From: Azolla caroliniana
Taxonomy: Eukaryota > Plantae > Polypodiophyta
NCBI GenBank assembly: GCA_043228905.1
Contig: JBHGNT010000021.1
Location: 7,564,001 to 7,628,000 of the forward strand
Reading direction: 5' to 3'
Length of the DNA: 64,000 nt
Shown: positions 3,221 to 26,594 of the stretch, one piece after another
How positions within the stretch are numbered: position 1 is the stretch's first letter
Layout: the number at the start of each line of letters is the position of its first letter
The notes under the pieces: model-generated
Told to the model about the DNA's origin: nothing
The model's database searches: none
The model's input: only the letters and a program-made list of their open reading frames with translations
Made by a program: the position numbers and the translations under genes

Positions 3221-3245
3221 GGGTGAAAGCATACGAGTGGAAACA
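3221..3245 (+). repeat. Left terminal inverted repeat
   Basis: Reverse complement of 26570-26594 with 2 mismatches. Confidence 0.92.
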
Positions 3246-3573
3246 ATTAGCTATGTCCTTGACATAGCTAATTAGCTATGCAAAAAGCTACCATTGATAA
3301 ATAGTCATTTTAGTAAAAAGCCATCATTAATAAATTAAGTATGCAAAAAACTACCATTGAAAATACTAGAGTGTTTTAATTACATATGTAAATGAGTGCC
3401 ATAAATGTGCAACATAAATTGATGTGTGCACCATAAATGTGTACCATAAATTATATATCGAATTCCTAGGTCCATTATGCATGATCCTTTGCCACATCAC
3501 GTAGGCCATCTCTAGTTGAGTACTGTGGGTTAGTTGCTACCACTGTTGCTAAACCCTATCGAGTCCACCTGCC

Positions 3574-4260
3574 GCCACTCTACACTGAGGGGCCGCTACT
3601 GTGCGTTCCAAGCATCATCAAAGAGCTGCTCAATCTGACGGGGTTCTCTTCTCTGTGACACTCTACACTCAGGGGCCACTACTGTGCATTCCAAGCATCA
3701 TCAAAGAGCTGTTCAATCTGACGGGGTTCTCTTCTCTGTGCCACTCTACACTCAGGGGCCATTACTGTGCGTTCCAAGCATCATCAAAGAGCTGTTCAAT
3801 CTGAGGGGGTTCTCTTCTCTGTGCCACTCTACACTCAGGGGCCATTACTGTGCGTTCCAAGCATCATCAAAGAGCTGTTCAATCTGACGGGGTTCTCTTC
3901 TCTGTGCCACTCTACACTCAGGGGCCGCTGCTGTGCGTTCCAAGCATCATCAAAGAGCTGTTCAATCTGACGGGGTTCTCTTCTCTTTGCCACTCTACAC
4001 TCAGGGGCTGCTACTGTGCGTTCCAAGCATAATCAAAGAGCTATTCAATCTGACGGGGTTCTCTTCTCTTTTCCACTCTCACTCAGGGGCCGCTACTGTG
4101 CGTTTCAAGCATCATTGGTAACTGTTCAATCTGACGGGGTTCTCTTCTCTATGCCACTCTATTCTCAAGTGCCTTCTATGTGCGTTTCAAGCATCATCGG
4201 TAACTGTTCAATCTGACGGGGTTCTCTCCTCCATTGCCATCATTCTATACTCAGTTGCCA
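3574..4260. repeat. 83-bp tandem minisatellite (about 8 units, decaying rightwards) upstream of the transposase
   Basis: Unit GCCACTCTACACTCAGGGGCC...GGGGTTCTCTTCTCTGT. The ORF-track echoes start every 83 bp (3601, 3684, 3767, 3850, 3933, 4016). Confidence 0.95.
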
Positions 4261-4562
4261 CTACTGTCCAGTCCCGGATTGCTTCCACATTTCGATTTGA
4301 CGGAGTTCACTCATCCAACGGCAACATTCTACACTCAGTTGTTGCCATTGGTCGGTCTTGGATCGCCTCCTCAACTGTTGGATCCAACGGAGTGAAATCC
4401 TCTACTGTTCGGTCTTGGATTGCAATAACTTTTCTGTCTATTGATTATCTTGTGTATTGTTGTGTCTAATCTTGTGTATTGTGTGGAATATTTTTGTGTA
4501 TTGTTGTTGCCCATAGCCATCTTTAATACTTGTTTTCTTTTCTGGAAATTTAGGGTTTTAAC

Positions 4563-7500
4563 ATGTCCAGCCAAATGGAAGGGGAAGAAGGGTGTTTAGA
4601 ATTACCCCTCAATGATCATAAGGATAGGGATGATGTTATCAGGACACAACAAGCCATACGAAACTATTGGGCAGAAAAAAAAAGGAAACATCGTCAATTG
4701 TTGAAGGATACGAAAGCCACACTCAGTAAAGGTAAGGATAGTTTAGCTGAGAATGTAAGTAATGTGACTACCATCATAGAGAGAAAGGTTGTAGACTATT
4801 TCAATGTTCAAACCAAGCACATCAGCAATGAAGAAAAGAAGGTAGTACTTTATGGAATATGTAATGATCCATCGATAAAGGACTTAGTTGATTGTGATGG
4901 TCTTAATGCAAACATATCATCTATTTTAGTAAATAATCTTCGTAATAGTTTCGTATCCATGAGTAGGTCAGAAGATGATCTTGTCTTAAAAAGGTCTAGT
5001 CTAATGATGTTACTTAATAGTGATGTTGACGATATAAACATCAGTGAACTATCTAAGGTAATTGGTGTTAGTAGAAAAACAGTGTACAATACAATGAACC
5101 GTATAATTTCCTCGGGTGAAGGAACTAGTCTACTAAAGCTAACTACAAGATGTAAGCCAATGACACCCATAACATTTGAAATCAAGGATGTAATCACAAT
5201 GTTTTGGACTAATGAGAGTAGGGTTTCACCCAATAAAAAGGATTTATGCAGGAAACGTGTTGGAAGAAATCAATACGAGGAGCATCCCATTCATCTTCTT
5301 GATGTACCTCAGGTATTTACATTTATCTCAACATTTGTTTTGACTCTACTCGGAAAGTTAATTAGCTCAGTTAGCAGAAAAGCTAATTAGCTTATCAGTT
5401 ACATTTACCTCAGTTAGCTACTAGGATCGCTACTACATAGGTAACTAGCTACTCTCAATAGTTACTACCATGATAGCTAATTAGCTATTCTCAATAGCTA
5501 ATTTAGGTACTACCAGATAATTAGCTGTACTGTTAGCTAGTTAGCTATCATGGTAGCTAGTTAGCTATTTCGTTATTACCAGCTAATTAGCTACTAGGAA
5601 AGCTAATTAGCTACCATGATAGCTAATTAGCTACTATGATAGCTACTACATAGGTAACTGGCTACTCTCAATAGCTACTACCATGATAGCTAATTAGTTA
5701 TTCTCAATAGCTAATTTAGGTACTACCAGATAATTAGTTGTACTGGAAGCTAGTTAGCTATCATGGTAGCTAGTTTGTTATTTCGTTATTACCAGCTAAT
5801 TAGCTACTAGGAAAGCTAATTAGCTACCATGATAGCTAATTAGCCACCGTGATAGCTAATTAGCTACTAGACCAGCTAATTTGCTACCATGATAGCTAAT
5901 TAGTCAGGATAGCTAATTAGCCACCATTATAGCTAATTAGCTACTAGACCAGCTAATTAGCTACCATGATAGCTAATTAGTTACTATGACAGCTAATTAG
6001 CCACCATGATAGCTAATTAGTTAGGATAGCTAATTAGCCACCATTATAGCTAATTAGCTACTAGACCAGCTAATTAGCTACCATGATAGCTAATTAGTTA
6101 CTAGGACAGCTAATTAGCCACCATGATAGCTAATTAGCTACCCTGATAGCTAATTAGTTAGGATAGCTAATTAGCCACCATATAGCTAATTAGCTACTAG
6201 ACCAGCTAATTAGCTACCATGATAGCTAATTAGTTACTAGGACAACTAATTAGCCACCATGATAGCTAATTAGCTACCATGATAGCTAATTAGCTACTAG
6301 ACCAACTAATTAGCTACCATGATAGCTAATTAGTTACTAGGAAAGCTAATTAGCCACCATTATAACTAATTAGCTACTAGACCAGCTAATTAGCTACCAT
6401 GATAGCTAATTAGCTACTAGACCAGCTAATTAGCTACCATGATAGCTAATTAGTTACTAGGAAAGCTAATTAGCCACCATGATAGCTAATTAGCTACTAG
6501 ACCAGCTAATTAGCTACCATGATAGCTAATTAGTTACTAGGAAAGCTAATTAGCCACCATGATAGCTAATTAGCTACTAGAGCAGCTAATTAGCTACCAT
6601 GATAGCTAATTAGCTACTAGGACAACTAATTAGCTACTAGGACAGCTAATTAGCTACCATGATAGCTAATTAGCTACTACGACAGCTAATTAGCTACCAT
6701 GATAGCTAATTAGCTACTAGAATAGCTAATTAGCTACTAGAATAGCTAATTAGCTACCATGATAGCTAATTAGCTACTACGACAGCTAATTAGCTACCAT
6801 GATAGCTAATTAGCTACTAGGACAACTAATTAGCTACTAGGACAACTAATTAGCTACCATGATAGCAAATTAGCTACTAGGACAACTAATTAGCTACCAT
6901 GATAGCAAATTAGCTACTAGGACAGCTAATTAGCTACCATTATAGCTAACTAGCTACTAGAATAGCTAATTAGCTACTAGGATAGTTCGCTAGTTACGAG
7001 AATAACTAATTCCCCTTTATTACGCAGGTCGATTTATTTATTAGGTTCAAACGAATGCATCCAACTATCAAAGTTCAACTACGAACATTCGAGTCTCTTA
7101 AGCCACACTTTGTGAGACGCTTAAAGGATCGATACACATGTTGTTGCATTTACCATGTACAGATGGGTTTTCTGAAGGACTCTGTTAATCTACTACGTCA
7201 CCATAGCGCATCCCTAACTAATAAAGTTTGCACATGTGGGTGCCCAATCTGTCGATCAAGCCCGCAAGAGGAGTGTAAATCATCTGAGCACGTTATCTCT
7301 TCCATGAGTTATTTATTAGATTCAATATTGTGTCCGAGAGAAACTGACGCTATCTTCCATATTCATAAATGTGTCATGGGTGTTTATGTCAAGATTGTGG
7401 CCCTACTAGATTTAGGTGGTGTCCAAATGAATTGAGTAGTGAAATATTGATCTCTGTGAAGTTATTTGAGTCAATGAACACCAATTTCGAAGGAAAGGTG

Positions 7501-8871
7501 TGTAAAAGAAAGGATCTAGTTCGGAAGATGCTTAAACCAAGGGATTTGGTGTCTCTGTTTGTATTATCTCTAGGAAAGTTCATTAAACACAACTTCATTT
7601 ATTCATGGCAGGCCCATCAGTTTAAGACTTGCATATCTGATTTCCCAAATGATGTAGTAGTCTCAGTAGTAGATTTCGCAGAGAATTATACTTTCAAGCA
7701 GCAGAATGAAATTCAATCTATGCATTGGTGTTCAGTTCAGGTAACCATTTTTGTGCACATAACATATTTTCGAGTTTCAGGTGATGTTAAAAAAGTAATT
7801 CATTTCTTTATTTCCGATGATAAGAAGCATGATACCTTGTTCGTCCAACACTGTTTTAAGTTACATTGGCAGTGGTTATTAGCTCAACGTTTGGAGCTTA
7901 CTCAACATTGGGTCTGGTCTGACGGAGCTGCGTCACAATTCAAGGCTCGACGTCCATTTTATTTTGTGGGGAGGTATCCTGCTATAACAGGTTTGGAGAT
8001 GAGATGGAATTTTTTTGGGTCTGGCCATGGTAAAGGTGAACATGATGGTGCAGGGGCTGTTATAAAGCGGGCACTTACCCATGAACAACTAAAGACAGAT
8101 GGTGTGCACATGAATTGTGCATCACATGTAGTTGAATTTTTAAGAACAAATATGTCAACGAGTGCCACAGGTGTTTATTCCTCGCAAGTCCGAGATATCA
8201 AACGTGAATTTTGGGAAGTGAAGATAGATGAAGTAAATAGGGAGAAGACCTGGGAGTGCCAAGGAATTCCCGAATTGCGATCTCTGCATGATGTTCGCGG
8301 TTATTCCAGGTTGGATGGTCATTGTATTGCGGTTAGAGAATTGACTTGTTTTTGCTTCCATTGTGTGCAGGGAAATTGGAGATATTGTCTAAACAAAGCA
8401 TACATTCAGAATTGGGAGTATCACACTCTGAATGATAAGGAAGCAGTTGATGGAGAAACAGGGCAGAATGCTGACTTCACATATGAGGGACTTGGAGATA
8501 CTTTGAGTGATGTCCTGAACGTTGGGGATAACTTCGCTGTAAATGCTGAAGAAGGCAATTCAGAGGGTGTTGATTTCTATATATTAAAGTGCACGGTTAG
8601 TAAACAGTGTGCAAGGCAGAATATTGTAGATGCATGGGGAAATTTTGTATCTGCCGAGACATTCTACATCGAAGGCATTTTTTATGCAAAACTAGATGAC
8701 TACGAATATGTGTACAGGCTGTTAGAAGACAAACCAGCGGCGTATATGTACTCTCATTTGGTCAGGTGTATCAACGTCCCAATGTCAGAATACAATAACT
8801 GCTCCGGTTTATACACTGTTGGTGCTAATGTGTATGAATGTATTTACAATAGTATGCCATGGAATTTGTAG
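4563..8871 (+). CDS. Sola2-like DDD transposase; two exons (4563-5312, 7028-8871) with one frameshift near 7380
   Basis: A GT-AG intron at 5313-7027 joins ...LLDVPQ|VDLFIRFKRMHP in frame. Cys cluster CCCIYH...CTCGCPIC. Catalytic-type motifs VVDFAENY, WSDGAASQFK and GHGKGEHDGAGAVIKR. C-terminal CFCFHC. Confidence 0.8.
5355..7010. repeat. Array of the palindrome TAGCTAATTAGCTA with short variable spacers, filling the transposase intron
   Basis: ~20-bp period, with spacers such as CCATGA, CTAGGA and CTAGAC. Confidence 0.95.
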
Positions 8872-8892
8872 CTACAAGTAGCACTTACCATG

Positions 8893-9347
8893 TGTTACCC
8901 GGACCCGGACAGTCAGTTTTACCGAACAAGTGGGAAAGCGTCGAAAACGGAGTCGGTTCGGATCGACTGTTCGGATCAATGACTCAGCAGTGAACAAAGA
9001 GAACTAAGTTAGTTAGATAATTTTGTAATTCTTGATAGTAAGTAGGAATAGTTCTTGATGAGAAAAGGCCTTCGGTATACCTATAAAAGGGAACCGAAGG
9101 CATTGTAAGATGGTCGTTTATTTAGTAATATAAGTTTAAGTTAGGAATATCATGTACGGATTTTGTGTTCTTTCTATTGTCTATGTTGTTAAGTGCAATC
9201 TTCCTAATTTATAACTAAGTAACGATCACGGTAATTACCGATTAATATAGTATATTTCCGTTCGTAAAACACAATTCCTTGTTAGAACGTTGAGTAGCGA
9301 CGTTCACTCTTCTGTATCGGTAGTAGTTAGTAATTAGCCGATTAACA
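8893..9347 (+). repeat. 5' LTR
   Basis: TGTTA...TAACA, direct repeat of 14026-14480. Confidence 0.95.
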
Positions 9348-9406
9348 CAGAAGAAATTTGGCATGCCCGGTTACATCTGCAATTAAGCAGAGAACAAATC
9401 GAATGG

Positions 9407-12262
9407 ATGTCGTATGAAGAGGAGACATCAGTCGGTTGTAAGCGCCCTCGTACAAGGTTAGTTACGAAGGCAGTGCAGGAAGCGTTCATTGCGCAAGAAC
9501 AGCCGGAATCAAGCACAAAGTGGTCAAAACTTCCTGACTTATCCGATCAATTACCTTCAGACGAAAAACAGACGGAAGAGGTATCGTTTTACGACATTTG
9601 GGACGATATGCCTTATACTTATTCTAAGTTCCGGGAAGGAACAGATGCGGAAGCACATGTTAGGGATTTCTTAACGACATGGGAGATTAACCATGGAGCT
9701 CAGCGATTGTCGGCAGATGCCGAAGATAAGTCAAAAATCGCTGAGTTCGTCTTATCATTAGAAGGATATTCCGCCAATTGGTTTGCGCAGAACGGTCTTC
9801 AAGGATTTCCATCCTTTGAAGTGTTAACTAGTAAATTTTTACAATTATTTCATCAACAAATTCCGCAGAAGGATTTGATTGCGCAATTTTATGCGTTATA
9901 TCAAGAAAAAAATGAAACAGTATCTCAGTTTGTGATACGATTTCAGAACTTACAGCTTCAGATTTCAAGGCCGATTCCGGATAATGAATTAAAAGAAGTC
10001 TTTCTAGAAGCTGTAAAAGAACCATTAAGGACGACATTGAAAGTGTTCGATTTTCGAAATCAGACTATCGAACAAGTAATTGATAAAGCAATAGAAATGG
10101 GTCGACCACCGGTCAATGTTCAGAGTATGGACATGTCGGCATTACAACGTACATTACCAACAATAGAGGAGTTACAATTTCGTCAAGCAGTTCAATGCAC
10201 CACTTGTTTAAATACGGGGCATTCGGCAATTGAATGTACGTTAAGAACACATTGTACAATATGTCATTCAAAATTACATTCAGTAGAACAATGTGAATAT
10301 AATCTGCTTAATAAAACTACGGCGTCAGTACGACAAATTTTTACTGACAATGGTTACCAAAATAACACTAATCTGTTCAATGGTTATCAAAATAATAATT
10401 TTTCACAAAATCAGCAAAATGTACAACAAAATCCAACTTTTCAACAAAATCCGGTTCTACAGCCAAATCAGATCTTTTCACAACAAAATATTCAACCCAC
10501 TCAAGTAACTCAAGCATTTCAACCAGGTTTTGCTCAATCCAACCCACCATTCGTACAGAATCCGAATCAATATTTTCAACAAAATAATCAAAGTTTCCAA
10601 CAAGGTAACCCACCATTTCAAGGGTTTCAACAGAACTGTCCGAATGTGCAACCGAATTCTGCATTTCAACCAAATCCGGCATTTCAACCGGGTAATATGA
10701 CCTTTCAACATAATACTCAAACCGTTCCACAAAATAATCAAATGTTTCAACAGAATAATTTTCCGCCAAATCAGGAGTTCGGGATAACACAAAATGTAGC
10801 ACAACCAAATGATAATACCGAACAATTTAGGCAGAATCGGTATAAAAATAAGAAATTTTACAAACCAAAAGCTACACGTCAATTCCAACAAAACCCGAGT
10901 GGTAATGAAGAGCAACAATTTAATAACGGCCAATTTGCACATGGAGAGACCGGTGGAACATTTGTACCCACTTGTTATATTTGTCGTCAACTAGGCCATT
11001 ATGCTAATCAATGTCCGGTTAAAGGAAAGGGTCCAGCAGTTAATATGGTAATACCGGAAGTTCAGCAAGTAACGACACGCAGCAAAAGCAAACAATCAGA
11101 GTGGGAAATTCAGGAAGAAGTTCGGAAGGCGGCAAAAGAATGGGTTGACGAAGCAAATCAAAGTAATGTGAATCGAATGTTACAAGACAATAACATTGAC
11201 CAGAACATCGCTGTACAACAGTCATTGGGGAATAAGGAACAGGAAGAAACTTGGAAACTGTTGGCTGATTGCCAAGTGTCATTGCCACTTACGGGCTTAC
11301 TTAAGTTAGTACCAAGGTTTACAGAAAAAGTGGCAGCATTAATTGCATATAAAGGTTCCGAACAAATAGCAGTACACTACAATCAGCCAAGTAATAACCC
11401 TTCGTGCCCTAGCTCGCCCAAACTCTGTTTTTCTGATTTTCATCGCTACAGAAGCTGTGCAGATCTCCAACTGTCATCGACAAGTGATTCAGAACAAGCA
11501 AACACAGAAGTCATGCCGATTCCTGTGTCTGAAGAACTGCGACTGTGGCTTTATGAGAGAAACTTACAAGGTTTCATCAAAGTAGCAGAAGCGGAACCTC
11601 ATCCGCAGGCGGAAGAATTGGTACAACAATTAGACATCACCAAGGTCACCACAAAGAAAATACGAAATGCATTACAGATGCCAAGAGGAGGCTTTGAGGC
11701 AGTTAAAAAACCTTCATCAGAAGCATTCCAATCGTATTTCGGGGAATCCTCACCCTCGGCAAAAGCATATCAGACTTATGGAGGTCGGGATGAGTTTTTC
11801 CATGAAGTGGCTAGATTTTTACTAGAGGTGGGATTTGTCAGTCCCCGTTTTTATTGTATGCCGAAAAAAAGGGTTGGGTTTATCATAGCCGCATACGAAA
11901 AAGAGGATTTCAACTGGCCACTATTGTCGGGGGAAGCTCTGAGAGAGCAGCTACAAGGGGTAAAAACAGGAAAACCAATGAAGCAAATTTTTGGTCGTTG
12001 GCTATCGGTATTGTTTCCGATTCAAGAATCGGAAACTCCTGTTCAGTCAAGAAGACCACCGATAGTACAAGCACCTCGAAGACACCGACAGGTAGTACAT
12101 GAAGAATGGATAGAGGAAGAATCGGCACATGCCGATAATATACAAACGGATATTCCTCAGTCGGAACCACCAAGACCAGAGAATTCCGAAAACAGGCAAC
12201 CAGCAGCCGAACAAGAAACAGTTGACCATTTGATAAACAAGCAGCAGCCGACAGAAAATTGA
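9407..12262 (+). CDS. Gag (capsid-like region, Cys/His knuckles, Q/N-rich linker) fused in frame to the N-terminal part of the accessory ORF
   Basis: 951-aa ORF with CCHC knuckles CTTCLNTGHSAIEC and CYICRQLGHYANQC. From M at 11513 it aligns with the extra ORF of the older gypsy (29936 onward). Confidence 0.8.
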   Translation: MSYEEETSVGCKRPRTRLVTKAVQEAFIAQEQPESSTKWSKLPDLSDQLPSDEKQTEEVSFYDIWDDMPYTYSKFREGTDAEAHVRDFLTTWEINHGAQRLSADAEDKSKIAEFVLSLEGYSANWFAQNGLQGFPSFEVLTSKFLQLFHQQIPQKDLIAQFYALYQEKNETVSQFVIRFQNLQLQISRPIPDNELKEVFLEAVKEPLRTTLKVFDFRNQTIEQVIDKAIEMGRPPVNVQSMDMSALQRTLPTIEELQFRQAVQCTTCLNTGHSAIECTLRTHCTICHSKLHSVEQCEYNLLNKTTASVRQIFTDNGYQNNTNLFNGYQNNNFSQNQQNVQQNPTFQQNPVLQPNQIFSQQNIQPTQVTQAFQPGFAQSNPPFVQNPNQYFQQNNQSFQQGNPPFQGFQQNCPNVQPNSAFQPNPAFQPGNMTFQHNTQTVPQNNQMFQQNNFPPNQEFGITQNVAQPNDNTEQFRQNRYKNKKFYKPKATRQFQQNPSGNEEQQFNNGQFAHGETGGTFVPTCYICRQLGHYANQCPVKGKGPAVNMVIPEVQQVTTRSKSKQSEWEIQEEVRKAAKEWVDEANQSNVNRMLQDNNIDQNIAVQQSLGNKEQEETWKLLADCQVSLPLTGLLKLVPRFTEKVAALIAYKGSEQIAVHYNQPSNNPSCPSSPKLCFSDFHRYRSCADLQLSSTSDSEQANTEVMPIPVSEELRLWLYERNLQGFIKVAEAEPHPQAEELVQQLDITKVTTKKIRNALQMPRGGFEAVKKPSSEAFQSYFGESSPSAKAYQTYGGRDEFFHEVARFLLEVGFVSPRFYCMPKKRVGFIIAAYEKEDFNWPLLSGEALREQLQGVKTGKPMKQIFGRWLSVLFPIQESETPVQSRRPPIVQAPRRHRQVVHEEWIEEESAHADNIQTDIPQSEPPRPENSENRQPAAEQETVDHLINKQQPTEN

Positions 12263-12277
12263 CAACAAACAGAGAAG

Positions 12278-13981
12278 ATGCGACAAAGGACAAGGGTTAA
12301 ACAAAAGGCTAATCGGCAATTCCAACCAGAAAACAGTGATGGGTCAGCACCGAAAAGGCAACGCACAAAGGAAAATTCGAATACGCCTGTAGTAGCAGAA
12401 GTAATAAAACTAGGGAATGAGAGCGTTTCGACACAACCTCAACAAGGACAATCTTCAAAAGTAGCAATTCGGGAAGCACATGGGTGCTTGGATATTCCAC
12501 CAGCAGCACATGAATTAGCTGCCATTTTACAGTTCGGAACTTCATACGAACTAGTTGAATGGTTGGCTAAAAGATTGACAGAAGTATCAGAACGGCTGGC
12601 TCAAGAACATAATGACCGAATAATGATACAGAAGGCCTTACGAGGAGTGTTGGAACCTCAAGAAAAAGCAGAGATAGAGAAAATCGGCCGGAAAAGAAAT
12701 GCACAGAATGGAGGGGAGGCTATTGAAATGCCACCATTACATGAAGCACTGGTCGAAATTCATAGAGAATATGAAACGGCACGCAAAGCAACCAGTGATA
12801 TGGCTGAAAGATACAAAAGTGTATCAGCATCGGCGGAGGTGCTGAAACATCAGTTTTGTAACATACAGGCAGAAAATAAAGAACTAAAAGAAAGTCTAAA
12901 CAAATGGGAAACACAGGCACGGCCTATGGCGTCGGAGTCAGAATGGCAGCAGAAATTGGAGGACGCTGAGAAAGCACGTCAAGCAGAAACAACAAGGGCC
13001 AACAATGCTGTATTTCGAACTACAGAATTAGAAAAACAAATAGAAACCATTCAGAATGGCCAATACAAACTTCTCGAAGAAAAAAATCAATTAATAAACG
13101 AATTACAGAAAAATCTAGAAGAAGCTAAGACGGCCAATCATACATATACCGAACAAATTGAGGAATTCGAAAGGTATATAGTGTCACAGGAAAGTCAATT
13201 GACAGAAAAAGAGCGGAGTCTTGAAGAAGTCAACAGAAGAATTACGGAACACCAGGAGGAATGGAGCAAAGAGAAATCGGCATTCGAACAACAACTGAAC
13301 GAAATTCGGAAGATATCGGAACAAAGGCGGCTGGACATATATGTAGTCGAATCCAAACTAATGCGGGCTGAAAGTGAAAACCGAGCCACTATTACGGATT
13401 TACGGAAAGAGTTGCAAACCACTCAATACGTCGCAAGCATCACTAAGGACAAAGTGCAGCACATCATAGGGAAACATCGAAACCTAGCAAAGAAAATGAT
13501 CGATGAATCCCTTGCGCAAGGATGGAAGTTATGGACGGCACAAGCGGCGGAATTACAGTTATTGCGTGCCGACAAAAATAACCGTCAGGTCCAAGGTGCA
13601 GGTTTTTTTAAAATGGCACAAAAGGATATTGACAATATCCAAGAGGATATCATGAAAGATATGGACGAAATTGCGGCATTTTACAGAGAAGAAATTCAAC
13701 GTATTATGCAAGAATTCGACAAAAATGATATAGGCACTTCCGTCCAGTTGGATAAAATCGAAGCCGAAAGAACCAGCAAGACTCCTGGTCTTCAAGCTCC
13801 CGGAAGAAGTGAACCAGAGCAGCCAACCGAATCACAACATTCAAAACCTGCTCCGAATGACGACTGTGACACAGATGAAGATGAAGATGAAGAGGAAGAT
13901 ATAGATGGAATACATCCAAGGCCAGAAGAGCCTTCGATTTTTGATATTCTGAACGATTCGGATGAAGAGCTACAAGAATAG
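12278..13981 (+). CDS. Coiled-coil accessory protein of the LTR element, function unknown
   Basis: 567-aa E/K/Q-rich ORF in the same frame as the 9407 ORF, separated by one TGA. WKLWTAQAAELQLLRA matches WQEWSAQSADLHILRA in ORF 31678. Acidic tail. Confidence 0.75.
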   Translation: MRQRTRVKQKANRQFQPENSDGSAPKRQRTKENSNTPVVAEVIKLGNESVSTQPQQGQSSKVAIREAHGCLDIPPAAHELAAILQFGTSYELVEWLAKRLTEVSERLAQEHNDRIMIQKALRGVLEPQEKAEIEKIGRKRNAQNGGEAIEMPPLHEALVEIHREYETARKATSDMAERYKSVSASAEVLKHQFCNIQAENKELKESLNKWETQARPMASESEWQQKLEDAEKARQAETTRANNAVFRTTELEKQIETIQNGQYKLLEEKNQLINELQKNLEEAKTANHTYTEQIEEFERYIVSQESQLTEKERSLEEVNRRITEHQEEWSKEKSAFEQQLNEIRKISEQRRLDIYVVESKLMRAESENRATITDLRKELQTTQYVASITKDKVQHIIGKHRNLAKKMIDESLAQGWKLWTAQAAELQLLRADKNNRQVQGAGFFKMAQKDIDNIQEDIMKDMDEIAAFYREEIQRIMQEFDKNDIGTSVQLDKIEAERTSKTPGLQAPGRSEPEQPTESQHSKPAPNDDCDTDEDEDEEEDIDGIHPRPEEPSIFDILNDSDEELQE

Positions 13982-14025
13982 GCGTGGGTTCGCTGGACAA
14001 GGTCCTGGCCCACGGACGTGCCAAG

Positions 14026-15867: not shown

Positions 15868-16037
15868 AGAGTTTCAGTCATAGAACAACACTCTTCAAAT
15901 TATCTTGGAAAAACATCATAGAGTTCCATTACATAATGTGGATCAAGCAACAACCAATCTGAGGTTTTACTTGTCCAACAGGATAGTAAAACTTCATAAA
16001 ACCCTAGCAAAATCCCTAAGCTAACAATCATATCCAA

Positions 16038-17441
16038 CTAAACAGTATTTCGCTCCACTACGTCTGGGCCCCTTGACCGAGTAACTGGTCTTGTTCCCGA
16101 TCGTGGCCCCTTCTTCAGCCTTTTTCTGGTTGGTTCCCCATTTAGCCTTGCTTCTTTCACCCAATGCGCAAGTGTGTCCTCCTCCGACAACCTTCCCATC
16201 GCCTCAGCAGCTAATTGCACATCAGCCGTTTCTTGAACTAGCTTTTCAAGTACAGAGGGATCTGTTTGGACATTTTCAGTAGTTGGGCTCGGTGGGGTGG
16301 AATCAAGGTCTTGAGACTCGAAGAAATGTTGCATCAAGTGTTCATAAACACTGTTGTTGTGAACCTCAGTTTTACATGTTGTTTCCACTATTTCACGGCA
16401 TTTCACATCGTTGCCTAATTCAGTACACTGTTCCAAAAGAATAGGGTGCAGCTGATCTGAAGGAGATGTGATAGCAGGACTCTTACTTTCAGCCACATTG
16501 GTAGTAGTATCCTCATCTGTTGCAGCATCATCAGCACCAGACACATCATGTGCCGTCCTTAATCCACAAGATTCTACAATAACATGACAGTTATTTAGGA
16601 TAGCTAATTAGCTACTTTACTAAACTATGGTAGAAGCTAGGATAGCTAATTAGCTAGTACGATAGCTAATTAGCTAGTATGATAGCTAATTAGGTACTTT
16701 ACTCAACTATGGTAGTAGTTAGGATAGCTAATTAGCTACTTTACTCAAGTATGGTAGTAGCTAGGATAGCTAATTAGCTACTTTACTCAACTATGGTAGT
16801 AGCTAGGATAGCTAATTAGCTACTTTACTAACTATGGTAGTAGCTAGGATAGCTAATTAGCTACTTTACTAACTATGGTAGTAGCTAGGATAGCTAATTA
16901 GCTACAATGAAAGCTAATTAGCTACTTTCTCAACTATGTAGTAGCTAGGATAGCTTATTAGCTACTAGGACAACTAATTAGCTGCCAGTAGCTAATTAGC
17001 TACTAGGACAGCTTATTAGCTACTTTACACAACTATGGCAGTAGCTAATTAGCTACTATGATAGCTAATTAGCTAGTAGGATAGCTAATTAGTTGCCAGT
17101 AGCTAATTAGCTACTAGGATAGCTAATTCGCTAGTACGATAGCTAATTAGTTGCCAGCAGCTAATTAGCTAGTAGGATAGCTAATTAGCTACTAGGATAG
17201 CTAATTAGTTACCAGTAGCTAATTAGCTAGTAGGATAGCTAATTAGCTTTTTTACACAACTATGGTACTAGCTAATTAGCTAGTAGGATAGCTAATTAGC
17301 TACTAGGATAGCTGTCAGGAACTCTATTAAGGCAGAGAAGGAATTAGTACTAAAAGAAGGATTAGTACTATTGTTGGGGAATAGTACTAAGACAGAGAAG
17401 GATTAGTACTATGAGAGGTGTCGAACTTTGAGAGAAGGAAT

Positions 17442-17504
<63 letters not shown>

Positions 17505-20500
17505 GTGATGCGAAAGATATATGTATTATATGACGGAAGATATACAACAGTAGTTAGAAGGCTTAAGACTGGCGTTGAACCGATTTGGTTCGAACTAATG
17601 CCTTGCGCCTCCTTTTATAGTGTCTTCAGGAATACTCCTGAAGTTTCTAGAATGTTCCAGAGAAATCTGGAATATACATCAATTTCCCAATAAAACCTAA
17701 ATGAAAATAATATCCTTCAAATTACAATTCATACCCTAATGGTAAAGTCTCGACCCGTGTAACAAAAGGTTATGGGTTCGAGTCTAGTTATGACACTATC
17801 CCCCCTTTAAAACGACGAGTTTCACGAGTCGTTTTGGATTGAGGACCCGGTTTCTCGGGATATCGTCGATGGAAGTCTTCTAGAAGAGCACAAGCATTGG
17901 TCACATTCTCGATCGGTTCCCAAGTACGCTCGCTGGGACTATATCCTAGCCAATCGACTAGATAGTAGAGCTTGTTGCGAACAATCTTGGAATCGAGGAT
18001 GGCAGCGACCTCATACTCAGGTCCATCTTCGAGCTCGATAGGAGGTGGAGGTTGTATAGTACGTCCTGGGATAGTGCTCTCGTGATAGGGTTCGAGGAGA
18101 GAACTATGAAACACCGGGTGTATCCGAAGTTGCGGAGGTAGCTCGAGACGAAAAGCGACATCATTAATCTTCCCGATAATACGGAAAGGACCTAATCGCC
18201 GATAATCCAACTTCTCACATGGGCGAGTAGTCTTGATGTGTCGTCGTAGCAGCCACACCCGATCTCCAATGTTAAAACTGGATGGAAGTCGATGACGATC
18301 TGCGTAGTCCTTGTGTGATTGTTGAGCTTGCTGGAGTTGAGTAGATAAATCCGCTTGTATCTTGCGCAACCGCTCCAAACGATCCTCCGCGCAAGGATTT
18401 GTGGACACTTCTGGGGTTTCAAGGACACACCACCGGGGATGATATCCCGTATAAGCGTAGAATGGCGTGACTTTAGTCGATGCGTGGATAGCGTTATTAT
18501 AGGCAAATTCGGCGAACTGAAGAATATCTGCCCAGTCATTCTGATGATAGTTGAGAAAGCACCGCAGATACTGCTCCAGTGTTTGATTTGTTCGTTCGGC
18601 TTGACCGTCGGTTTGTGGGTGGTAGCCGGAGGAGAGGTTACAAGTGACCTTCAGCATTTTAAAAAGGTGCTTCCAGAATTTTGACACAAACTGGGGTCCA
18701 CGATCGCTGATGATATTATCAGGGAGTCCATGATGCCGACATACTTCCCGCATGACAATTTCGGCGGTGTCTTCACTAGATATTTCTTTAGTACATGGTA
18801 AGAAATGAGCCATCTTCGTATATCGATCCACCACTGTGAGAATCGCACTGAATCCCTTAGAGACTGGAAGATCTGTAATGAAGTCAAGAGCAATGGATTG
18901 CCATGGCTTGCTCGGAATTGGTAATGGTTCTAATAAACCATATGGATGATGTCTTGGCATTTTCGCTCTGCAGCATGTATCGCAAGTCCGAACAAAATCT
19001 TCGACAAATTGTCGCATACGGGGCCACCAGAATGATCGTTGTACTAAATCTAATGTTTTAGTACTACCAAAATGTCCTGCTGTATATGTGTCATGGCAGT
19101 TTTGTACTACTCGAAGGCGGCAAGAACCATTAGGAACATACAAAAGTTCTTTAAAGAAGAGTAATCCATCACAGTATTTGAATTGCCGATAATCCGTACC
19201 TGGTGATTGTGATTGTGAACATGACGCTCGAGAGGGGTCAATTTGTGCTAGTATAGCTTGGGCGAAAGCGTCAGTCTTCAAGTCCTCACGTATAGTATTG
19301 GTAATGTCGGAATCCACGGGCATGTCAAAGACCTGTGCTGCTTGCAGTCGTGCTGGACCCAAGATTACTTGCTTCTGGTTATCGAAAGCTGGCTCACCGG
19401 GACGTGGTGTTAGATACGAACGCCGTGATAATGCATCTGCCTTCCCTTAGTGCTTCCCCGGACGATATGTAATTTTGAAGTCGAAGCGTGTGAGGAAGTG
19501 GGCCCACCGAGCTTGATGTCGATTCAGTACACGAGCATCTTGAAAGTAGGCAAGGTTCTTGTGGTCACTGAATACAGTGACCTGATGAGGAGATCCCTCC
19601 AGGAAATGCCTCCATTGCATAAAAGAATCAACTATTGCTAATAGCTCTTTATCATGAATTTCGTAGTTGATTTCGGCGGCGTCAAACTTACGGGAGTGGA
19701 AAGCCACAGGATGTAGCTTCTCGTCGTTACCCTGTTGTGACAGAATGCTCCCCAATGCGAAATCCGATGCATCAGCTTCGATAATGAATGGTTTTTCCGG
19801 ATCCACATGACCTAAAATTGGAGCTGATGTAAACGCCTTCTTAAGACTCTCGAAAGCCATGTCCGTCTCTTTAGACCAAATGAATGATTGTCCCTTCCTG
19901 GTGAGCTGTGTGAGAGGCAGCACAATTTTTGAGTAATTTTGTATGAACTTCCGGTAGAAATTTGCAAAGCCTAGGAAGCATTGCACATCCCGCACCGAAC
20001 GCGGAGTGTGCCATTCTATCACCGTTTTGACCTTGGCTGGGTCCATAGATATGCCTTCTGAGGAGATGACATAGCCGAGAAACTCCACTTGGTTGCACCC
20101 GAAACTACATTTCTCTAACTTTGCATACAGACCATGTTCTCGAAGTCGTTTTAGTACTAATAGTACATGAGAATCATGTTCTTCTTGGGTCTTTGAATAA
20201 ACCAGTAGATCATCCAAATATATGATCAAAAAATCATCCAAGAGATCTCGAAATATATCATTCGCCATGTGCTGGAAGACTGCCGGCGCATTAGTGAGTC
20301 CGAACGGCATGACCGTATACTCGAAGTGCCCATATCTGGTGCGAAACGCGGTCTTCCATTCATCTCCTGGTCGGATCCGTACGAGGTTATAGGCTCCTCG
20401 TAAGTCTATCTTCGTGAAGAACCTGGCACCGTTGATCCGTTCTAAAAGACTTGAGATAAGGGGAAGAGCATACCTATTTCTTACTGTGACCTTATTCAAG

Positions 20501-22759
20501 CCACGGTAATCTACAACGAGTCGAAGCGAGCCATCTTTTTTCTTGACGAAGAAAATGGGTGCGCCAGCTGGAGATTTCGAATGCCGAATGAAACCGTTCT
20601 CCAAATTCTCCTCTATATAGGCTCGAAGGACTTCTAGCTCGGTTGGTGACAAATTGTAGATCGGCCCCCATGGCGGCTCTTTTCCCGGTTGTAAGTCGAT
20701 GGCGCAGTCGTACGGCCGATGATGAGGAAGTGTGTTGGCTTGTACTTTATCGAACACATCAGCATACTGACGATACTTCTCGGGAAGTTGAACGGTGGAC
20801 TCCTCTTTGGTGGTGCTGGAGGGTTGTACTGATATTGCAAAGAGAAACATTTCCTCCTTGCGCCCTTCCTCACGCAACTGACGTAGCGAAATGGTTGCAA
20901 CCTTCTGGGTAGATCCTTGGGTTTGTCGCAACCGGATTTCCCTTGTCCTCCAATCTATGTCTGGGTCATGTAACTCGAACCATGGTAATCCTAAAACTAT
21001 GGGATGTTCTGGAATACTAATAATATTAAATGATACTACACATGTTAAGTTATCTAGGACAATATTAACGGGTTCCGACTCTTCTATGATATTACCAGAA
21101 GCAATGGGACGACCATCAATGACTACTACTGAGGCTGGACATGGGAGCTTTCTGAGAGATATCTGATGAGCTCGGGCAAAATTCCTATCCATGAAGCAAG
21201 AATTAGCTCCGGAATCTAGAAGGGCTAAGGTATGTACTGGAGGGGTACTTTTAGTACTAACTGCTACTTGGGCTACGAACACATCACTAACTTGCTTAGA
21301 GGGAATGGAACCACTAATGGGCTGCACAGATCTAGGGCTGTCCAACCAAACGGCTCCTATTTTGGCTGGACTTAGTCGTTTAACTCTTCTTCTAATTGGC
21401 TAAGGACATCAAATTTGTTTGCGAGATTCAGACTATTAGTACTATTAGGACTATTATGACTATGAGGATTATCAGAGATTCCTACTGAAATAGACTCGGG
21501 TTTAGTATAGTCAGAACTAACAATGACTTGGTTTACCTGCCTTCTTGGTCTATGGGGACAGTTTATCGCGATATGCCCTGGTCCACCGCAATAAAGGCAT
21601 AATCGGTTTGTTCGGCGTCGTTGCTTTTCCTCCTCCGATAGCGGCCCACGACGACGTGTAGTGTCAATTTCCATTGGAGTTGGAGTACTTACTGGAGGCG
21701 CATTATGTGACTCCCTTTGAAAGGGTTTCGCTACCACTGAGGCATAGGTAGGCTCGGATCTTGCCCTCGGCATCTGAAATTGTCGTTCCGAACGTCGCTC
21801 GAAGAGGCGGTTGTCACATCTGACCGCTCGACTGATTGCTTCTGTTAATGATTTTGGCTCTTCAGGGAAAGTCAAGAGTAAATCCTTGACATCGTTGCGT
21901 AGACCATAGCGGAACTGCTCCATCAATGCTTGATCATCCCAGGGGATATCGGCGGCGAGTAGGCGGAAATCTGCAGCATATGCGGAGGCTGGACGGTCAC
22001 CTTGGCGTAATCGCCGGATTTTGTTGATTGCAGTCCTTATGCTGTCAGTATCTCCAAAACATGCTTTAAACTCACTTATGAATTCTTCAAAATTATTTAG
22101 TACTGGAGATTCCTTTTCTAGTAGCGGAGCGAACCATGCTAATGCTGAGCCATTTAACAACGTGCCTACTAAACCCACTCGTGATGCATCGGTGGGATAT
22201 CGGGACGGATGCATTTGAATAACTAACCGTACCTGGTTAAGGAACCCTCTAAACTGCGATCGCGTTCCATCGAACTTCGTGGGAAGGCCAATCTTGGGTT
22301 CTTTATGAATCCCTTGTGCTCCGTGCCCTTGTTGTTGCATTGCTACGATGGTTGCTTCGAGTTGTTGCACGCGTAACGCAAGTTCCCCATGCTGTTGTTG
22401 CGTTTGCTGCTTTTCTAAGGAAATTTGCTGAAGATCCCCCAACAAGCGTTGATTTTCTTGTTCCAAAGCATGAAACTTCTCTTTCAAGCATTGAAATTCC
22501 GAGAAAACGGATTGATACTCTTCAGCGCTAACGGTGGCCATGGGATGAAGGAAAAGGGAAATAAGAGACTAGTAGGAAAGGAGGGAGACAGAAGGAAGAG
22601 GGAGACTAGTAGACCAAAATCGGTTCAAACTGTCAGGAACTCTATTAAGGCAGAGAAGGAATTAGTACTAAAAGAAGGATTAGTACTATTGTTGGGGAAT
22701 AGTACTAAGACAGAGAAGGATTAGTACTATGAGAGGTGTCGAACTTTGAGAGAAGGAAT

Positions 22760-22804
<45 letters not shown>

Positions 22805-25800
22805 GTGATGCGAAAGATATATGTATTATATGACGGAAGATATACAACAGTAGTTAGAAGGCTTAAGACTGGCGTTGAACCGATTTGGTTCGAACTAATG
22901 CCTTGCGCCTCCTTTTATAGTGTCTTCAGGAATACTCCTGAAGTTTCTAGAATGTTCCAGAGAAATCTGGAATATACATCAATTTCCCAATAAAACCTAA
23001 ATGAAAATAATATCCTTCAAATTACAATTCATACCCTAATGGTAAAGTCTCGACCCGTGTAACAAAAGGTTATGGGTTCGAGTCTAGTTATGACAATAGC
23101 TAATTAGCTGCTAGTAGCTAATTAGCTACTTTACACAACTATGGCAGTAGCTAATTAGTTACTAGGATAGCTAATTAGTTGCCAGTGGCTAATTAGCTAG
23201 TAGGATAGCTAATTAGCTTTTTTACACAACTATGGTACTAGCTAATTAGCTAGTACCATAGCTACTAGGATAGCTAATTAGCTAGTAGGATAGCTTATTA
23301 GCTACTTTACACAACTATGGTAGTAGCTAGGATAGCTAATTAGCTACTATGGTAACTAATTAGCTACTTTACTCAACTATGGTAGTAGCTAGGATAGCTA
23401 ATTAGCTACTTTACGCAACTATGGTAGTAGCTAGGATAGCTAATTAGCTACTTTACTAACTATGGTAGTAGCTAGGATAGCTAATTAGCTACTTTACTAA
23501 CTATGGTGGTAGCTAGGATAGCTAATTAGCTACTTTCTCAACTATGTAGTAGCTAGGATAGCTTATTAGCTACTAGGACAACTAATTAGCTGCCAGTAGC
23601 TAATTAGCTACTAGGATAGCTAATTAGCTGCCAGTAGCTAATTAGCTACTAGGATAGCTTATTAGCTACTTTACACAACTATGTCAGTAGCTAATTAGCT
23701 AGTAGGATAGCTAATTAGTTGCCAGTAGCTAATTAGCTACTAGGATAGCTAATTCGCTAGTAGGATAGCTAATTAGTTGCGAGTAGCTAATTAGCTAGTA
23801 GGATAGCTAATTAGCTTTTTTACACAACTATGGTACTAGCTAATTAGCTAGTACCATAGCTAATTAGCTACTAGGATAGCTTATTAGCTACTTTACACAA
23901 CTATGGCAGTAGCTAATTAGTTACTAGGATAACTAATTAGTTGCCAGTGGCTAATTAGCTAGTAGGATAGCTATTTAGCTTTTTTACAGAACTATGGTAC
24001 TAGCTAATTAGCTAGTACCATAGCTAATTAGCTACTAGGATAGCTAATTAGCTAGTAGCTCATTAGCTGCCAGTAGCTAATTAGCTAGTAGGATAGCTAA
24101 TTAGAAAAGACTAAGCTTATTAGCTACAGTATGGTATACCTGTTAGTTTTCTCCACTCATTTGGTAGAGTTGTACTGCAATCTCCCAAACAGAATGCAGC
24201 AATTCGACAGGCATGTTGAAAACAAAGCAGATGGTATGTGTGGTTGCATGGTTGTAGGTGAACCAACAAAGACGCAGTTTTGTCCTCCACACCTAACCCG
24301 CAAGCGATGCAACGTGCTTGAACTGTCAATAAATCATTTTCTGGTTCTACTTCATTTGGTAAGGGAGCAAGAATGTCCAGGTCCAAATCCTGTCTGGTCC
24401 TTACCATTCCCTCCACAAAATGTAGCTTCTTCTTAAGGCAGCTAACTACCTGTTCTTGATGAATGTATTGTTCCTTCAACGCAACAGAGAAATTTACCGA
24501 TTAATTATTCTTGTTGTTGAAAGATACACCAACTTTGCTCAGGAATCGTTAACTTACTTGAAGCTTATCCAAATTGTAATCTGCAACAGTATTTACACCT
24601 AGAAGGTCCAGGTTCATTGAAAGAACCTGGATCTCTATTTGCAGTTCTATTTTACGCTGGGGATCCAGTGGCCCCTCTAATTCAAGCTCCTGTTGCGCAA
24701 CCTATTCCAGATAATGCTTGATTAGCACATTTTACTCGTTATTTATAACACAATCACATACCAGCAAAACAATAGTTACCTGAATCTTATTTCTAATTGT
24801 TGTAATAGCAGAAGGAACTTTGCTCTCCATTGCAGAAGCCATTGTGGCTTTCTCTAAATCAGTCTTAAAAAATGTCAATGTCTCACAGGCTTCATGGACA
24901 TTTTTTAGCATATAGCTAACCAATGTCTCACCTGTATCATCGACATTGGCTTTCCTTGGGTGTCGGTGTGGTGTATGCCCCCGGTCTTGCTGGGAGTCGG
25001 CAGTTGCATCAACAGCTGCCATGCTCCAAAATCTGTCTATTTTTTGTGCCAAGGTCCCCATCTTTCGGCATCTTTTTACCGATGCCTCACCATAGACTCC
25101 CCAAGCTACCCTATACATTTCAGGGTCTCTAGATTCCTTCGTTGTTTTGCAGTACTCATATGCAAATGCTCTAGCAAATGAAACTGACAACTCATTGTTG
25201 ACTGGGATCTCCTGATGAACTTTCTGGTGCAGTCTCATGCAGTCATCGTACAAGTCGGCTCGTACATGCTTCAGCTTGACCTTGCCTTTGACTCTAGGCA
25301 CTGTATATACTGTCATCCAGTCTATATCACTGATCAATTTATCACTTAGGACAGCAGGGTCAACACCCTCGAGTGACAGACCATAGGTGTTGTGGAAGTC
25401 CTCCTTTGTCTCGCAAAATTTTGCGAAGTTTAGCACTCTCGTATACGGAAGAACGAGCCATCTGAAATATCATTTCAGAAATCAGAAATAGTGCAAAATC
25501 AGAATATGTGAGAATCAAAAACCCCAATCAACAACAACAAATATGGTGCAAAATCTTTAACTTAGCAAATCAGAAACCCTAATCATAATTTGTATTCAGA
25601 AATTTGAAATCAGAAACCCTAATCAAAATCTGTAATCAGAAGTTTGAAATCAGAAACCCTAATCAAAATCTGTAATCAGAAGTTTGTAACCAGAAACCTT
25701 ATTCAGAAATTCTAATCAGAAATTTATAATCAAAAACCCTAATCAGAAATTTCAATCAGAAACCCTAATCAAAAATTTCAATCACAAACCCTAATCAAAA

Positions 25801-26343
25801 ATCCTAAGCAGAAATTTATAAACAAAAACCCTATTCAGAAATTCTAATTTGTAATCAAAATTTGTAACCAGAAACCCTATTCAGAAATTCTAATCAGAAA
25901 TTTATAATCAAAAACCCTAATCAGAAATTTCAATCACAAACCCTAATCAGAAATTTCAATCACAAACCCTAATCAAAAATTCTAATAAGAAATTTATAAA
26001 CAAAAACCCTAATCAGAAATTTCAATCAGAAACCCCAATCATCACTAAAGACAGGATTAAACACAAAAAAAGTAATATAAACACACCTGTTGCTACTCCC
26101 CGATTTGCGAGACATCCTTGTATGGGACTCCAAGGACTTCGCCCTATTCGATTTTGGGGAAATATGAATCGGCACCAAAGTTCAGACAGTAGTCAAAAAG
26201 AAAAAACAAATGTTTGGGGTTTCTGTAACTGAAACATACCTGGACGATGATCGAGCGGGTTCTGTGTTGTAGCTCTCAATCTGCAATGTCGATTTTTTGC
26301 TGTTGCGGGAGCTACGTCTGCGTTCGTGCTCTGAGTACTCCAT
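16038..26343 (-). CDS. Transposon-borne multi-exon accessory gene: unknown N-terminal domain, coiled coil, RING-like finger, acidic tail with a basic NLS-like end
   Basis: Proposed exons 26343-26240, 25461-24780, 24701-24558, ~24473-24140 and 16573-16038 splice in frame at GT-AG sites. RING-like motif CIACG...QPCNHTYHLLCFQHAC...C. Confidence 0.6.
16595..17312. repeat. TAGCTAATTAGCTA array, left part (intron of the RING-like gene)
   Basis: Same palindrome, with longer higher-order spacers such as CTTTACTCAACTATGGTAGTAGCTAGGA. Confidence 0.95.
17313..17795 (-). repeat. 3' LTR of the chromovirus
   Basis: 483 bp, repeat of 22631-23095, adjacent to the PPT. Confidence 0.95.
17788..21384 (-). CDS. 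Pol (protease-RT-RNase H-integrase-chromodomain), interrupted by a TAA at 19447-19449
   Basis: Motifs LLDSGA, YLDD, EADASD, the integrase HHCC zinc finger, SDRGPQF, GQAER and chromodomain YEVAAILDS...YLVDWLGY...TWEP. The stop falls in YRPGKH*GKADAL. Confidence 0.92.
21372..22541 (-). CDS. Gag of the chromovirus
   Basis: 389 aa with PTKFDG, LRQG, PMEID and the knuckle CLYCGGPGHIAINC. Confidence 0.93.
   Translation of the reverse strand: MATVSAEEYQSVFSEFQCLKEKFHALEQENQRLLGDLQQISLEKQQTQQQHGELALRVQQLEATIVAMQQQGHGAQGIHKEPKIGLPTKFDGTRSQFRGFLNQVRLVIQMHPSRYPTDASRVGLVGTLLNGSALAWFAPLLEKESPVLNNFEEFISEFKACFGDTDSIRTAINKIRRLRQGDRPASAYAADFRLLAADIPWDDQALMEQFRYGLRNDVKDLLLTFPEEPKSLTEAISRAVRCDNRLFERRSERQFQMPRARSEPTYASVVAKPFQRESHNAPPVSTPTPMEIDTTRRRGPLSEEEKQRRRTNRLCLYCGGPGHIAINCPHRPRRQVNQVIVSSDYTKPESISVGISDNPHSHNSPNSTNSLNLANKFDVLSQLEEELND
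22631..23095 (-). repeat. 5' LTR of the chromovirus
   Basis: 465 bp, with minus-strand TATA (CTATAAAAGG) at 22911-22920. Confidence 0.95.
23096..24125. repeat. TAGCTAATTAGCTA array, right part (same intron, split by the chromovirus)
   Basis: Continues the array across the ATAGC TSD. Confidence 0.95.
25570..26040. repeat. AAACCCTAATCAGAAATT-type minisatellite (telo-box-like) in the first intron of the accessory gene
   Basis: Many copies of (C)AGAAACCCTAATC with roughly 26-39 bp spacing. Confidence 0.85.
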
Positions 26344-26569
26344 CTGCGTTCAAAATCAGACTTAGGCTAAACAGGAAATTGATGACATTGAAGTCGACCT
26401 TAGATGATGGTGATATTCCCCAAGTTCCACTACGTCTGAAAGAGAAGTTCAAATATTTGAGTTTTTTCATAAATTAGTTTTTCAAATATTTGATTTTCCC
26501 ACAAAAAAGACTAGCTAAACAAATAGCTAATTAGCTATGGCCATTTTAGTAGCTAATTAGCTATAATAG

Positions 26570-26594
26570 TGTTTCCACTCGCATGCTTTTACCC
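26570..26594 (-). repeat. Right terminal inverted repeat
   Basis: TGTTTCCACTCGCATGCTTTTACCC, followed by TSD AATA. Confidence 0.92.

Follow-up and report, generated by a model that had tools for sequence, protein, structure and literature searches.

Element boundaries and insertion site

The 64,000-bp stretch of Azolla caroliniana DNA analysed here (the window; contig JBHGNT010000021.1 of assembly GCA_043228905.1) carries at positions 3221-26594 a large DNA transposon, which a preliminary description made from the letters alone had likened to Sola2. We identify it, with high confidence as to both identity and architecture, as a copy, now inactive, of an autonomous cut-and-paste transposon of the Sola2 type (DDD, three-aspartate) in a fern-like genome. 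The 12 kb of the element consist of two transcription units facing each other, one for the transposase and the other for a RING-like coiled-coil protein and a NIF/FCP1-like protein, with a repeat array between them. The copy is dead: its transposase is frameshifted by a 2-bp insertion and its RING-like gene contains stop codons.

The left terminal inverted repeat (TIR) is the 25-bp sequence GGGTGAAAGCATACGAGTGGAAACA (3221-3245, plus strand), which begins with GGG. The right TIR, GGGTAAAAGCATGCGAGTGGAAACA (26570-26594, minus strand), matches it at 23 of 25 positions, and the element ends are GGG...CCC. Within the window the TIR matched only twice, at the two ends of the element, with a chance expectation of 0. 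The target site duplication (TSD) AATA is present on both sides (3217-3220 and 26595-26598). For these features the coordinates given beforehand proved exact.

The element sits in an already decayed Ty3/gypsy pol region. Each flank was translated on its own. On the left the translation is ...ETPRTLQIAN with one base left over, and on the right, taken two bases in, it is LPAGERATLIHLLTDY-stop-DVFAWS-stop-TDMKGLDP, followed by matches to reverse transcriptase, RNase H and integrase. For the gypsy frame to close, 1, 4 or 7 bp must have been duplicated, which the observed 4 bp of AATA fits; the frame resumes once one AATA is taken out, so the precise interruption claimed earlier holds. The host gypsy element itself (window 1-3220 and 26599 to ~30000) has two in-frame stops just past the insertion point (...TDY-stop-DVFAWS-stop).

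Two nested long terminal repeat (LTR) retrotransposons, described below, account for much of the length. Once they are subtracted (23,374 - 5,593 - 5,788), 11,993 bp remain that belong to the element itself, in agreement with the earlier estimate of about 12 kb. The Sola2-type element entered the gypsy pol region with a 4-bp duplication, and the two LTR retrotransposons came later. An Rfam search of the element found nothing.

Transposase gene and Sola2 assignment

The transposase is encoded on the plus strand by two exons:

4563-5312, plus strand: transposase exon 1, 250 codons, with weak helix-turn-helix (HTH) matches; ends at the donor CAG/GTATTT (5312/5313)
5313-7027, plus strand: predicted transposase intron, phase 0, GT..AG; contains the whole 20-bp-period palindrome array
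7028-8871, plus strand: transposase exon 2, with a Cys-rich region, the DDD catalytic core and a C-terminal domain

Exon 1 lies within the open reading frame (ORF) 4563-5390, and the weak HTH matches come from Pfam. Together with the donor, the predicted acceptor ...TTACGCAG at 7027/7028 would unite the two frames in phase 0 and give a spliced protein of ~863 amino acids (aa), close to the ~860 aa proposed before. The two exons were searched separately. We assign exon 1 to the transposase gene because its last ~45 residues (FW..SR.SPNKKD..R.R.G.NQY..H) directly precede the catalytic core in three other sequences, the Calypogeia model P0077 and two uninterrupted proteins, P0144 and P0154. The transposase of this copy is 96% identical to the intact protein P0001, to which a close copy of the element in another assembly (L002) is 99% identical. 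Compared with P0001 and L002, a 2-bp insertion near 7381-7384 splits the frame of the window copy into ORFs 7055-7435 and 7369-8871. A single TTAGGGTTT (window 4550-4558) stands 4 bp ahead of the transposase ATG and may be a promoter element.

The motifs on which the preliminary description had relied (DFAENY / SDG..xQFK / GHGKG..DG) were found in ORF 7369-8871 as DFAENY, SDGAASQFK and GHGKGEHDG. The same ORF had no Pfam match, whether to DDE_Tnp_4, to Plant_tran or to any other transposase family. A word-indexed search returned 144 relatives, among them sequences from Cryptomeria, Taxus, Calypogeia, Riccia and Klebsormidium, and a profile built from 18 sequences reached 14,546 cluster representatives, with Lineus, Priapulus, Pecten and Calypogeia among their sources; the transposase family is very large and eukaryote-wide. 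Residues D206, D289 and D330 are invariant across the 18 relatives. The predicted structure (mean predicted local distance difference test score, pLDDT, 79) has a beta1-3/alpha/beta4/alpha/beta5 core, with strands and helices ordered as in the RNase H-like fold. The best PDB rows returned by Foldseek for this model were NurA, retroviral integrases, a terminase nuclease, EndoV, Piwi and Hermes, all with E > 0.001 and none significant.

The papers that define Sola are those of Bao, Jurka and Kapitonov (2009) and of Yuan and Wessler (2011). Two Sola2 transposases of dictyostelids, Sola2_DFa-2 and Sola2_PPa-1, are printed in the supplement of PMC3627910, and the window transposase was compared with them by eye. 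The blocks of Sola2_DFa-2 are, in order, VLMDFKENIALG, HFDVFSDVLNHCSSYVIHSIKL, FFWSDGAKHFKS and QYHGKSDVDRHF; those of the window transposase, in the same order, are SVVDFAENYTFK, HFFISDDKKHDTLFVQHCFKL, WVWSDGAASQFKA and GSGHGKGEHDGAG. The three aspartate blocks read DFAENY / WSDG..QFK / GHGKGEHD here versus MDFKEN / WSDGAKHFK / YHGKSDVD in the published Sola2 sequence, with aspartate spacings of D-82-D-40-D and D-86-D-42-D, respectively. Sola2 membership is supported by the AATA duplication, the collinear DDD blocks and the GGG...CCC ends, which fit the 5'-GRG termini given for Sola2 in the preliminary description; no other superfamily was matched in Pfam.

GGG ends and a two-gene layout are also known from PIF/Harbinger elements. 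That the element belongs to another superfamily of this kind, its 4-bp duplication being accidental, is nevertheless hardly credible, and we reject it. The gypsy frame admits a duplication of 1, 4 or 7 bp only, the motif blocks agree with published Sola2 transposases, and neither a match to DDE_Tnp_4, Plant_tran or another Pfam transposase family nor a Myb-like second gene was found.

Accessory genes

The unit facing the transposase was read on the minus strand:

24120-25463, minus strand: remnant of the RING-like gene, with N-domain, coiled-coil region and C-x2-C..C-x-H-x2-H-x2-C..C; four in-frame stops, no ATG
16038-16544, minus strand: 168-aa ORF upstream of the NIF-like ORF; also in L002, 87% identical
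14812-15867, minus strand: NIF/FCP1-like ORF of 351 aa, intact; PF03031

From the right end, the order on this strand is the 13/40-bp array, the RING-like remnant, a palindrome array, the 168-aa ORF and the 351-aa NIF-like ORF. The convergent accessory genes noticed before are therefore real as minus-strand ORFs facing the transposase.

Proteins of the RING-like family, Adiantum nelumboides models included, consist of an N-domain of ~130 aa, a coiled coil and the cysteine-histidine pattern C-x2-C...C-x-H-x2-H-x2-C...C-x4-C. The N-domain is strongly conserved (...EVPKRGSKVKC...FTSVYQEPP.NYGMEVTKAFA.GFLYE...) and gave no usable match in the ESM Atlas. The pattern is kept in 11 of 13 fern proteins; in the liverwort it takes the canonical form, with C-x2-C at its end. 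In the related locus L001 (17037-17271) the N-terminus of the RING-like protein is made of 27- and 57-bp coding repeats (KEEKPSRVQ...) that are absent from sister families.

The NIF-like ORF scored 30.0 bits against PF03031 (cut-off 21.8), and its counterparts in loci L001, L006 and L007 scored 38.2, 34.9 and 33.4. Its motif I is non-canonical, reading LILELDKVL in the window family in place of DxDx(T/V), and is D(M/L/I)NGV in L001, L004 and Adiantum. Because of this degenerate motif we describe the protein as NIF-like and not as an active phosphatase of the C-terminal domain (CTD) of RNA polymerase II; judging by the motif, it is probably a pseudo-phosphatase or an altered enzyme rather than an ordinary phosphatase. 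The 168-aa ORF is probably an exon of the NIF unit.

All RING-like ORFs diverge right after a likely splice donor, and the interval from the array to the NIF-like ORF contains short conserved coding blocks. The automatic Adiantum models P0136 and P0138 link RING and NIF parts. Pieces of the RING/NIF unit are annotated as host "hypothetical proteins" in Adiantum nelumboides (P0138, P0136 and P0130); the start of P0138 has a weak match to a TNP-like RNase H N-terminal domain, and that model looks chimeric.

Palindrome and other repeat arrays

Three kinds of internal tandem array (83-bp, 20-bp palindrome and 13/40-bp) were found, as had been reported. The non-coding parts of the element are laid out as follows (none of these features has a strand):

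3246-3279: left subterminal palindromes, a half-site and one full AGCTAATTAGCT, directly after the TIR
3574-4231: 83-bp tandem array, 8 copies with 92% matches, upstream of the transposase start
5381-6985: palindrome array in the transposase intron, 20-bp period, 36 exact 12-mer copies, ~70 units by Tandem Repeats Finder (TRF)
14641-14706: small cluster of palindromes between the converging 3' ends of the two units
16596-17312: second palindrome array, left part, cut by LTR element #2
23096-24104: second palindrome array, right part, cut by LTR element #2
25567-26041: 13/40-bp array upstream of the RING-like gene, with 10 telo-box-like AAACCCTAA
26512-26569: right subterminal palindromes, two complete and one degenerate, adjoining the right TIR on its inner side

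The element holds all of the 83 copies of the palindrome AGCTAATTAGCT present in the window. Counts of the palindrome core, TAGCTA, are 216 for the element's own 12 kb (18 per kb), 0 for the 11.4 kb of nested LTR elements and 7 for the remaining 40.6 kb (0.17 per kb). The palindrome sites are five: directly inside the left TIR and the right TIR, in the intron of the transposase gene, between the convergent 3' ends of the two units, and between the RING-like and NIF-like genes. In the transposase intron, 27 of 44 intervals between palindromes are 20 bp, about two helical turns.

Both promoter-side regions contain other repeats in place of the palindrome. The 83-bp array could possibly represent promoter repeats. 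The ten AAACCCTAA copies, which resemble the plant telo-box, span window 25574-26004 upstream of the RING-like gene and may be promoter elements.

Recurrence and selection in related elements

Relatives of the element were found in several assemblies. L002 retains the HTH exon, the intron array and the facing 168-aa and NIF-like ORFs, and its transposase is intact. Four further contigs from three assemblies (L001, L005, L006 and L007) carry transposases ~52% identical to those of the window family. Their palindrome is GGTAGCTACC, unlike AGCTAATTAGCT, with arrays at the same two positions. L001, 12.4 kb long, has the TIR GGGTATATGCATGAATAGGTGG, flanks TCCA/TTCA (3 of 4 bases matching) and the same gene order throughout; here GGTAGCTACC adjoins both TIRs. 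The order of RING-like gene, array, NIF-like gene and facing transposase is repeated in L001, L006 and L007. It is found in part in L002 (NIF-like gene and facing transposase) and L005 (HTH exon, array, catalytic exon). In L007 a second TAGCTA-rich cluster (5037-5587) lies between the 3' ends of the NIF-like and transposase genes, as a counterpart of window 14641-14706.

Between families, the ratio of nonsynonymous to synonymous substitution rates (dN/dS) was 0.22-0.27 for the RING-like gene, 0.19-0.29 for the NIF-like gene and 0.09-0.17 for the transposase; some of the dS values were close to saturation or beyond it. Between the window copy and L002 it was 0.23 for the transposase and 0.53 for the NIF-like gene. 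The accessory genes are under purifying selection. With the layout recurring and dN/dS well below 1, the accessory genes are not a one-off capture, which the preliminary description had listed among the outcomes that would count against it; of its other two, neither another superfamily in Pfam nor, in the papers searched, an earlier account of this structure turned up.

Gene capture is frequent in plant transposons, both accessory domains are common in hosts, and the RING-like gene is broken in this copy. All this would suit a reading of the two genes as captured fragments of host genes (Pack-type cargo) without a role. We reject this reading as very improbable, given that the same order and orientation occur in four families from at least four assemblies and that the proportion of nonsynonymous differences (pN) is far below that of synonymous ones (pS) between families. 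Besides, the relatives found for the window NIF-like ORF are few, namely four near-identical ORFs and one 200-aa fragment, and the one checked (P0123) adjoins a transposase.

A liverwort locus (L003) also speaks against host capture, as its RING-like gene likewise faces the transposase. In L003 the HTH domain and the catalytic core are contiguous, and the facing gene encodes the N-domain and a canonical RING (hhalign E of 8e-5 and 2e-4). It looks from this comparison as if the RING-like partner were old, and the NIF-like gene and the arrays later additions in the fern families. In the more distant L004 (2017-2748 and 5360-6301; transposase 38% identical), a NIF-like ORF is found on the same strand 7 kb upstream, beside an ORF with a weak DUF7869 match; the arrangement may differ here, or a neighbouring element may be involved.

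Nested retrotransposons

The two insertions that lengthen the element are not its own:

8893-14480, plus strand: nested LTR retrotransposon #1, gag only; 455-bp LTRs 99.6% identical; TSD CCATG
17313-23095, minus strand: nested Ty3/gypsy chromovirus #2, with chromodomain; LTRs 96.3% identical; TSD ATAGC

Element #1 inserted 16 bp past the transposase stop codon, with its LTR starting 21 bp past the stop. It is young and non-autonomous, with two ORFs, one of 951 aa (gag/zinc-knuckle) and one of 567 aa without an assigned function; no protease, reverse transcriptase or integrase was found in 8893-14480. Element #2 inserted within a palindrome array, splitting it.

Proposed role of the arrays

Taken together, we consider it probable that the best explanation is a fern Sola2 copy whose arrays serve as a family-specific binding platform working with the accessory module. 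The palindrome would be the binding site of a dimeric DNA-binding protein encoded by the element; we propose a dimeric protein because the palindrome is short, perfect, located beside both ends and family-specific. The most likely candidate binder would be the HTH domain of the transposase, followed by the N-domain of the RING-like protein. At the ends, the palindromes would mark the element for transposition. The arrays, which we lean towards regarding as putative binding platforms, would provide a dense family-specific surface gathering the transposase and the RING-like and NIF-like proteins, directly or through the transposase, on the non-coding DNA of the family's own copies. By analogy with VANC on the motif repeats of VANDAL elements, the purpose of such a platform might be to control the expression or chromatin state of these copies.

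That the module counteracts silencing is a tentative suggestion, and on balance a doubtful one. A fuller version, which we find unlikely as a whole, would have fern Sola2 elements carry a chromatin module aimed at their own copies. In it, a domain that binds the palindrome would recruit a RING-like ubiquitin ligase and a catalytically altered Pol II-CTD-phosphatase-like protein to the arrays in the introns and spacers of the element, so that only copies of the same family would be protected or tuned. The module would be convergent with VANC but assembled from different parts, with motif turnover between AGCTAATTAGCT and GGTAGCTACC around a shared TAGCTA core.

Tandem repeats are common within large plant DNA transposons, and the arrays could be neutral by-products: subterminal transposase sites amplified by slippage or unequal exchange and tolerated, the proteins alone being of importance. 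The length of the intron array, ~1.6 kb here versus ~0.7 kb in the close copy L002, fits this idea, as does the absence of palindrome arrays from L003 and L004. Against it, the arrays keep the same two positions despite the swap of AGCTAATTAGCT for GGTAGCTACC, so that they must have been kept or rebuilt through motif turnover; the 20-bp spacing is strict; and other non-coding parts of the element hold different repeats and not the palindrome. We judge neutral amplification to be an improbable account of the arrays.

Negative autoregulation or copy-number control was also considered: transposase bound to the arrays would block elongation or be titrated off the ends, and the RING-like protein would turn the transposase over. 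Repression by a transposon protein that binds its own sites is known from TnpA of Spm. The arrays lie within transcription units and not upstream of them, and a RING-like E3 ligase might target a protein of the element. Nothing in the present data separates this scheme from the platform or anti-silencing reading, and a plain titration sink would leave the conserved phosphatase-like gene unexplained; we think autoregulation quite unlikely.

Several observations weigh against the explanation that we prefer. The dN/dS of the HTH exon is ~1 between the window copy and L002. Palindrome arrays are absent from both L003 and L004, and L003 also has no NIF-like gene; because of these absences, the arrays and the NIF-like gene are dispensable for the wider lineage. 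The Pfam matches of the RING pattern (E 1e-3 to 0.2) fall under the thresholds, and the model of the RING-like protein is poor (pLDDT 55), with VIA-align and Foldseek matching its coiled coil only. The choice of Sola2 over Sola1 and Sola3 was judged by eye against the two published sequences, not by phylogeny, and is to be read as provisional. The exon joins are predicted from homology and from the automatic Adiantum models P0136 and P0138, and so is the make-up of the RING and NIF parts, as a single gene or as two. A search of sequencing runs brought up no RNA run containing the stretch, the only run that contained it being made of short, DNA-like contigs; three runs compared with 14482-16595 gave short contigs only, with one weak 184-bp joint.

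Comparison with known systems

Sola is among the least studied cut-and-paste superfamilies and is present in plants only as entries in repeat tables. Plant records of it already exist for Physcomitrella, in repeat tables of C-fern and in a survey of 1007 genomes. The earlier view of Sola2 as compact single-gene elements mainly of animals and protists was therefore too narrow, the more so as the dictyostelid elements measure 10-14 kb and carry a second gene, Fanzor1 (PMC3627910). The suggestion of an undescribed plant lineage of large Sola2 elements with accessory proteins fared better: the gene order recurs in relatives, and our literature search found no paper in which Sola2 is linked to a RING gene, a NIF gene or arrays of this kind. 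In this lineage, present in ferns and partly in a liverwort, two additional proteins are maintained by purifying selection, and family-specific palindromes resembling binding sites lie inside the elements' own genes. Two motifs, two candidate proteins and families with apparently swapped specificity make it natural test material. Fern annotation is affected as well, since automatic Adiantum models list these transposon ORFs as host proteins.

The closest relatives in kind are the dictyostelid Sola2 elements. The DFa and PPa elements have AT-rich 4-bp TSDs and short TIRs, and DFa-2 and DFa-3 end in GAG...CTC, in a source text that is partly garbled (PMC3627910). The window element shares with DFa-2 and PPa-1 this type of duplication, the short TIRs and G-purine-G ends, as well as a transposase of ~860-890 aa with DF.EN / WSDG...FK / HGK...D in the same order and at similar spacing. 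It is likewise large, with extra genes. In contrast, its extra genes form a RING-like and NIF-like unit, whereas the second gene of the dictyostelid elements is the TnpB-like Fanzor1. Palindrome arrays and intron-borne arrays, present here, have not been reported for dictyostelid Sola2, and the hosts are land plants in one case and amoebae in the other.

The TnpA protein of En/Spm (CACTA) elements binds subterminal 12-bp repeats and has a role in both regulation and transposition. The resemblance to our proposal would lie in the binding of many short repeats near the ends by a protein that the element itself encodes. The repeats of En/Spm are subterminal, whereas those described here also form kilobase-long arrays within introns; TnpA derives from a transposase, while the extra genes here are RING-like and NIF-like.

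VANC binds family-specific tandem motifs in the non-coding parts of VANDAL21 (PMC5735166), and a recent preprint argues that transposases can be sequence-specific regulators, and activators, of their own copies (10.64898/2026.08.24.746577). Like the element in the window, VANDAL21 of Arabidopsis is a TIR transposon with an extra conserved gene and with short tandem motifs in non-coding regions that differ between related families (PMC5735166, PMC10398659). Unlike it, VANDAL21 belongs to another superfamily, Mutator, and its accessory protein has no sequence relation to those found here, where the motif is palindromic. If the proposed function holds, the fern elements would offer a second independent system beside VANDAL/VANC for the study of transposon self-recognition and host silencing. 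The likeness is a functional analogy drawn from layout and not one of membership; binding and demethylation by VANC belong to VANDAL.

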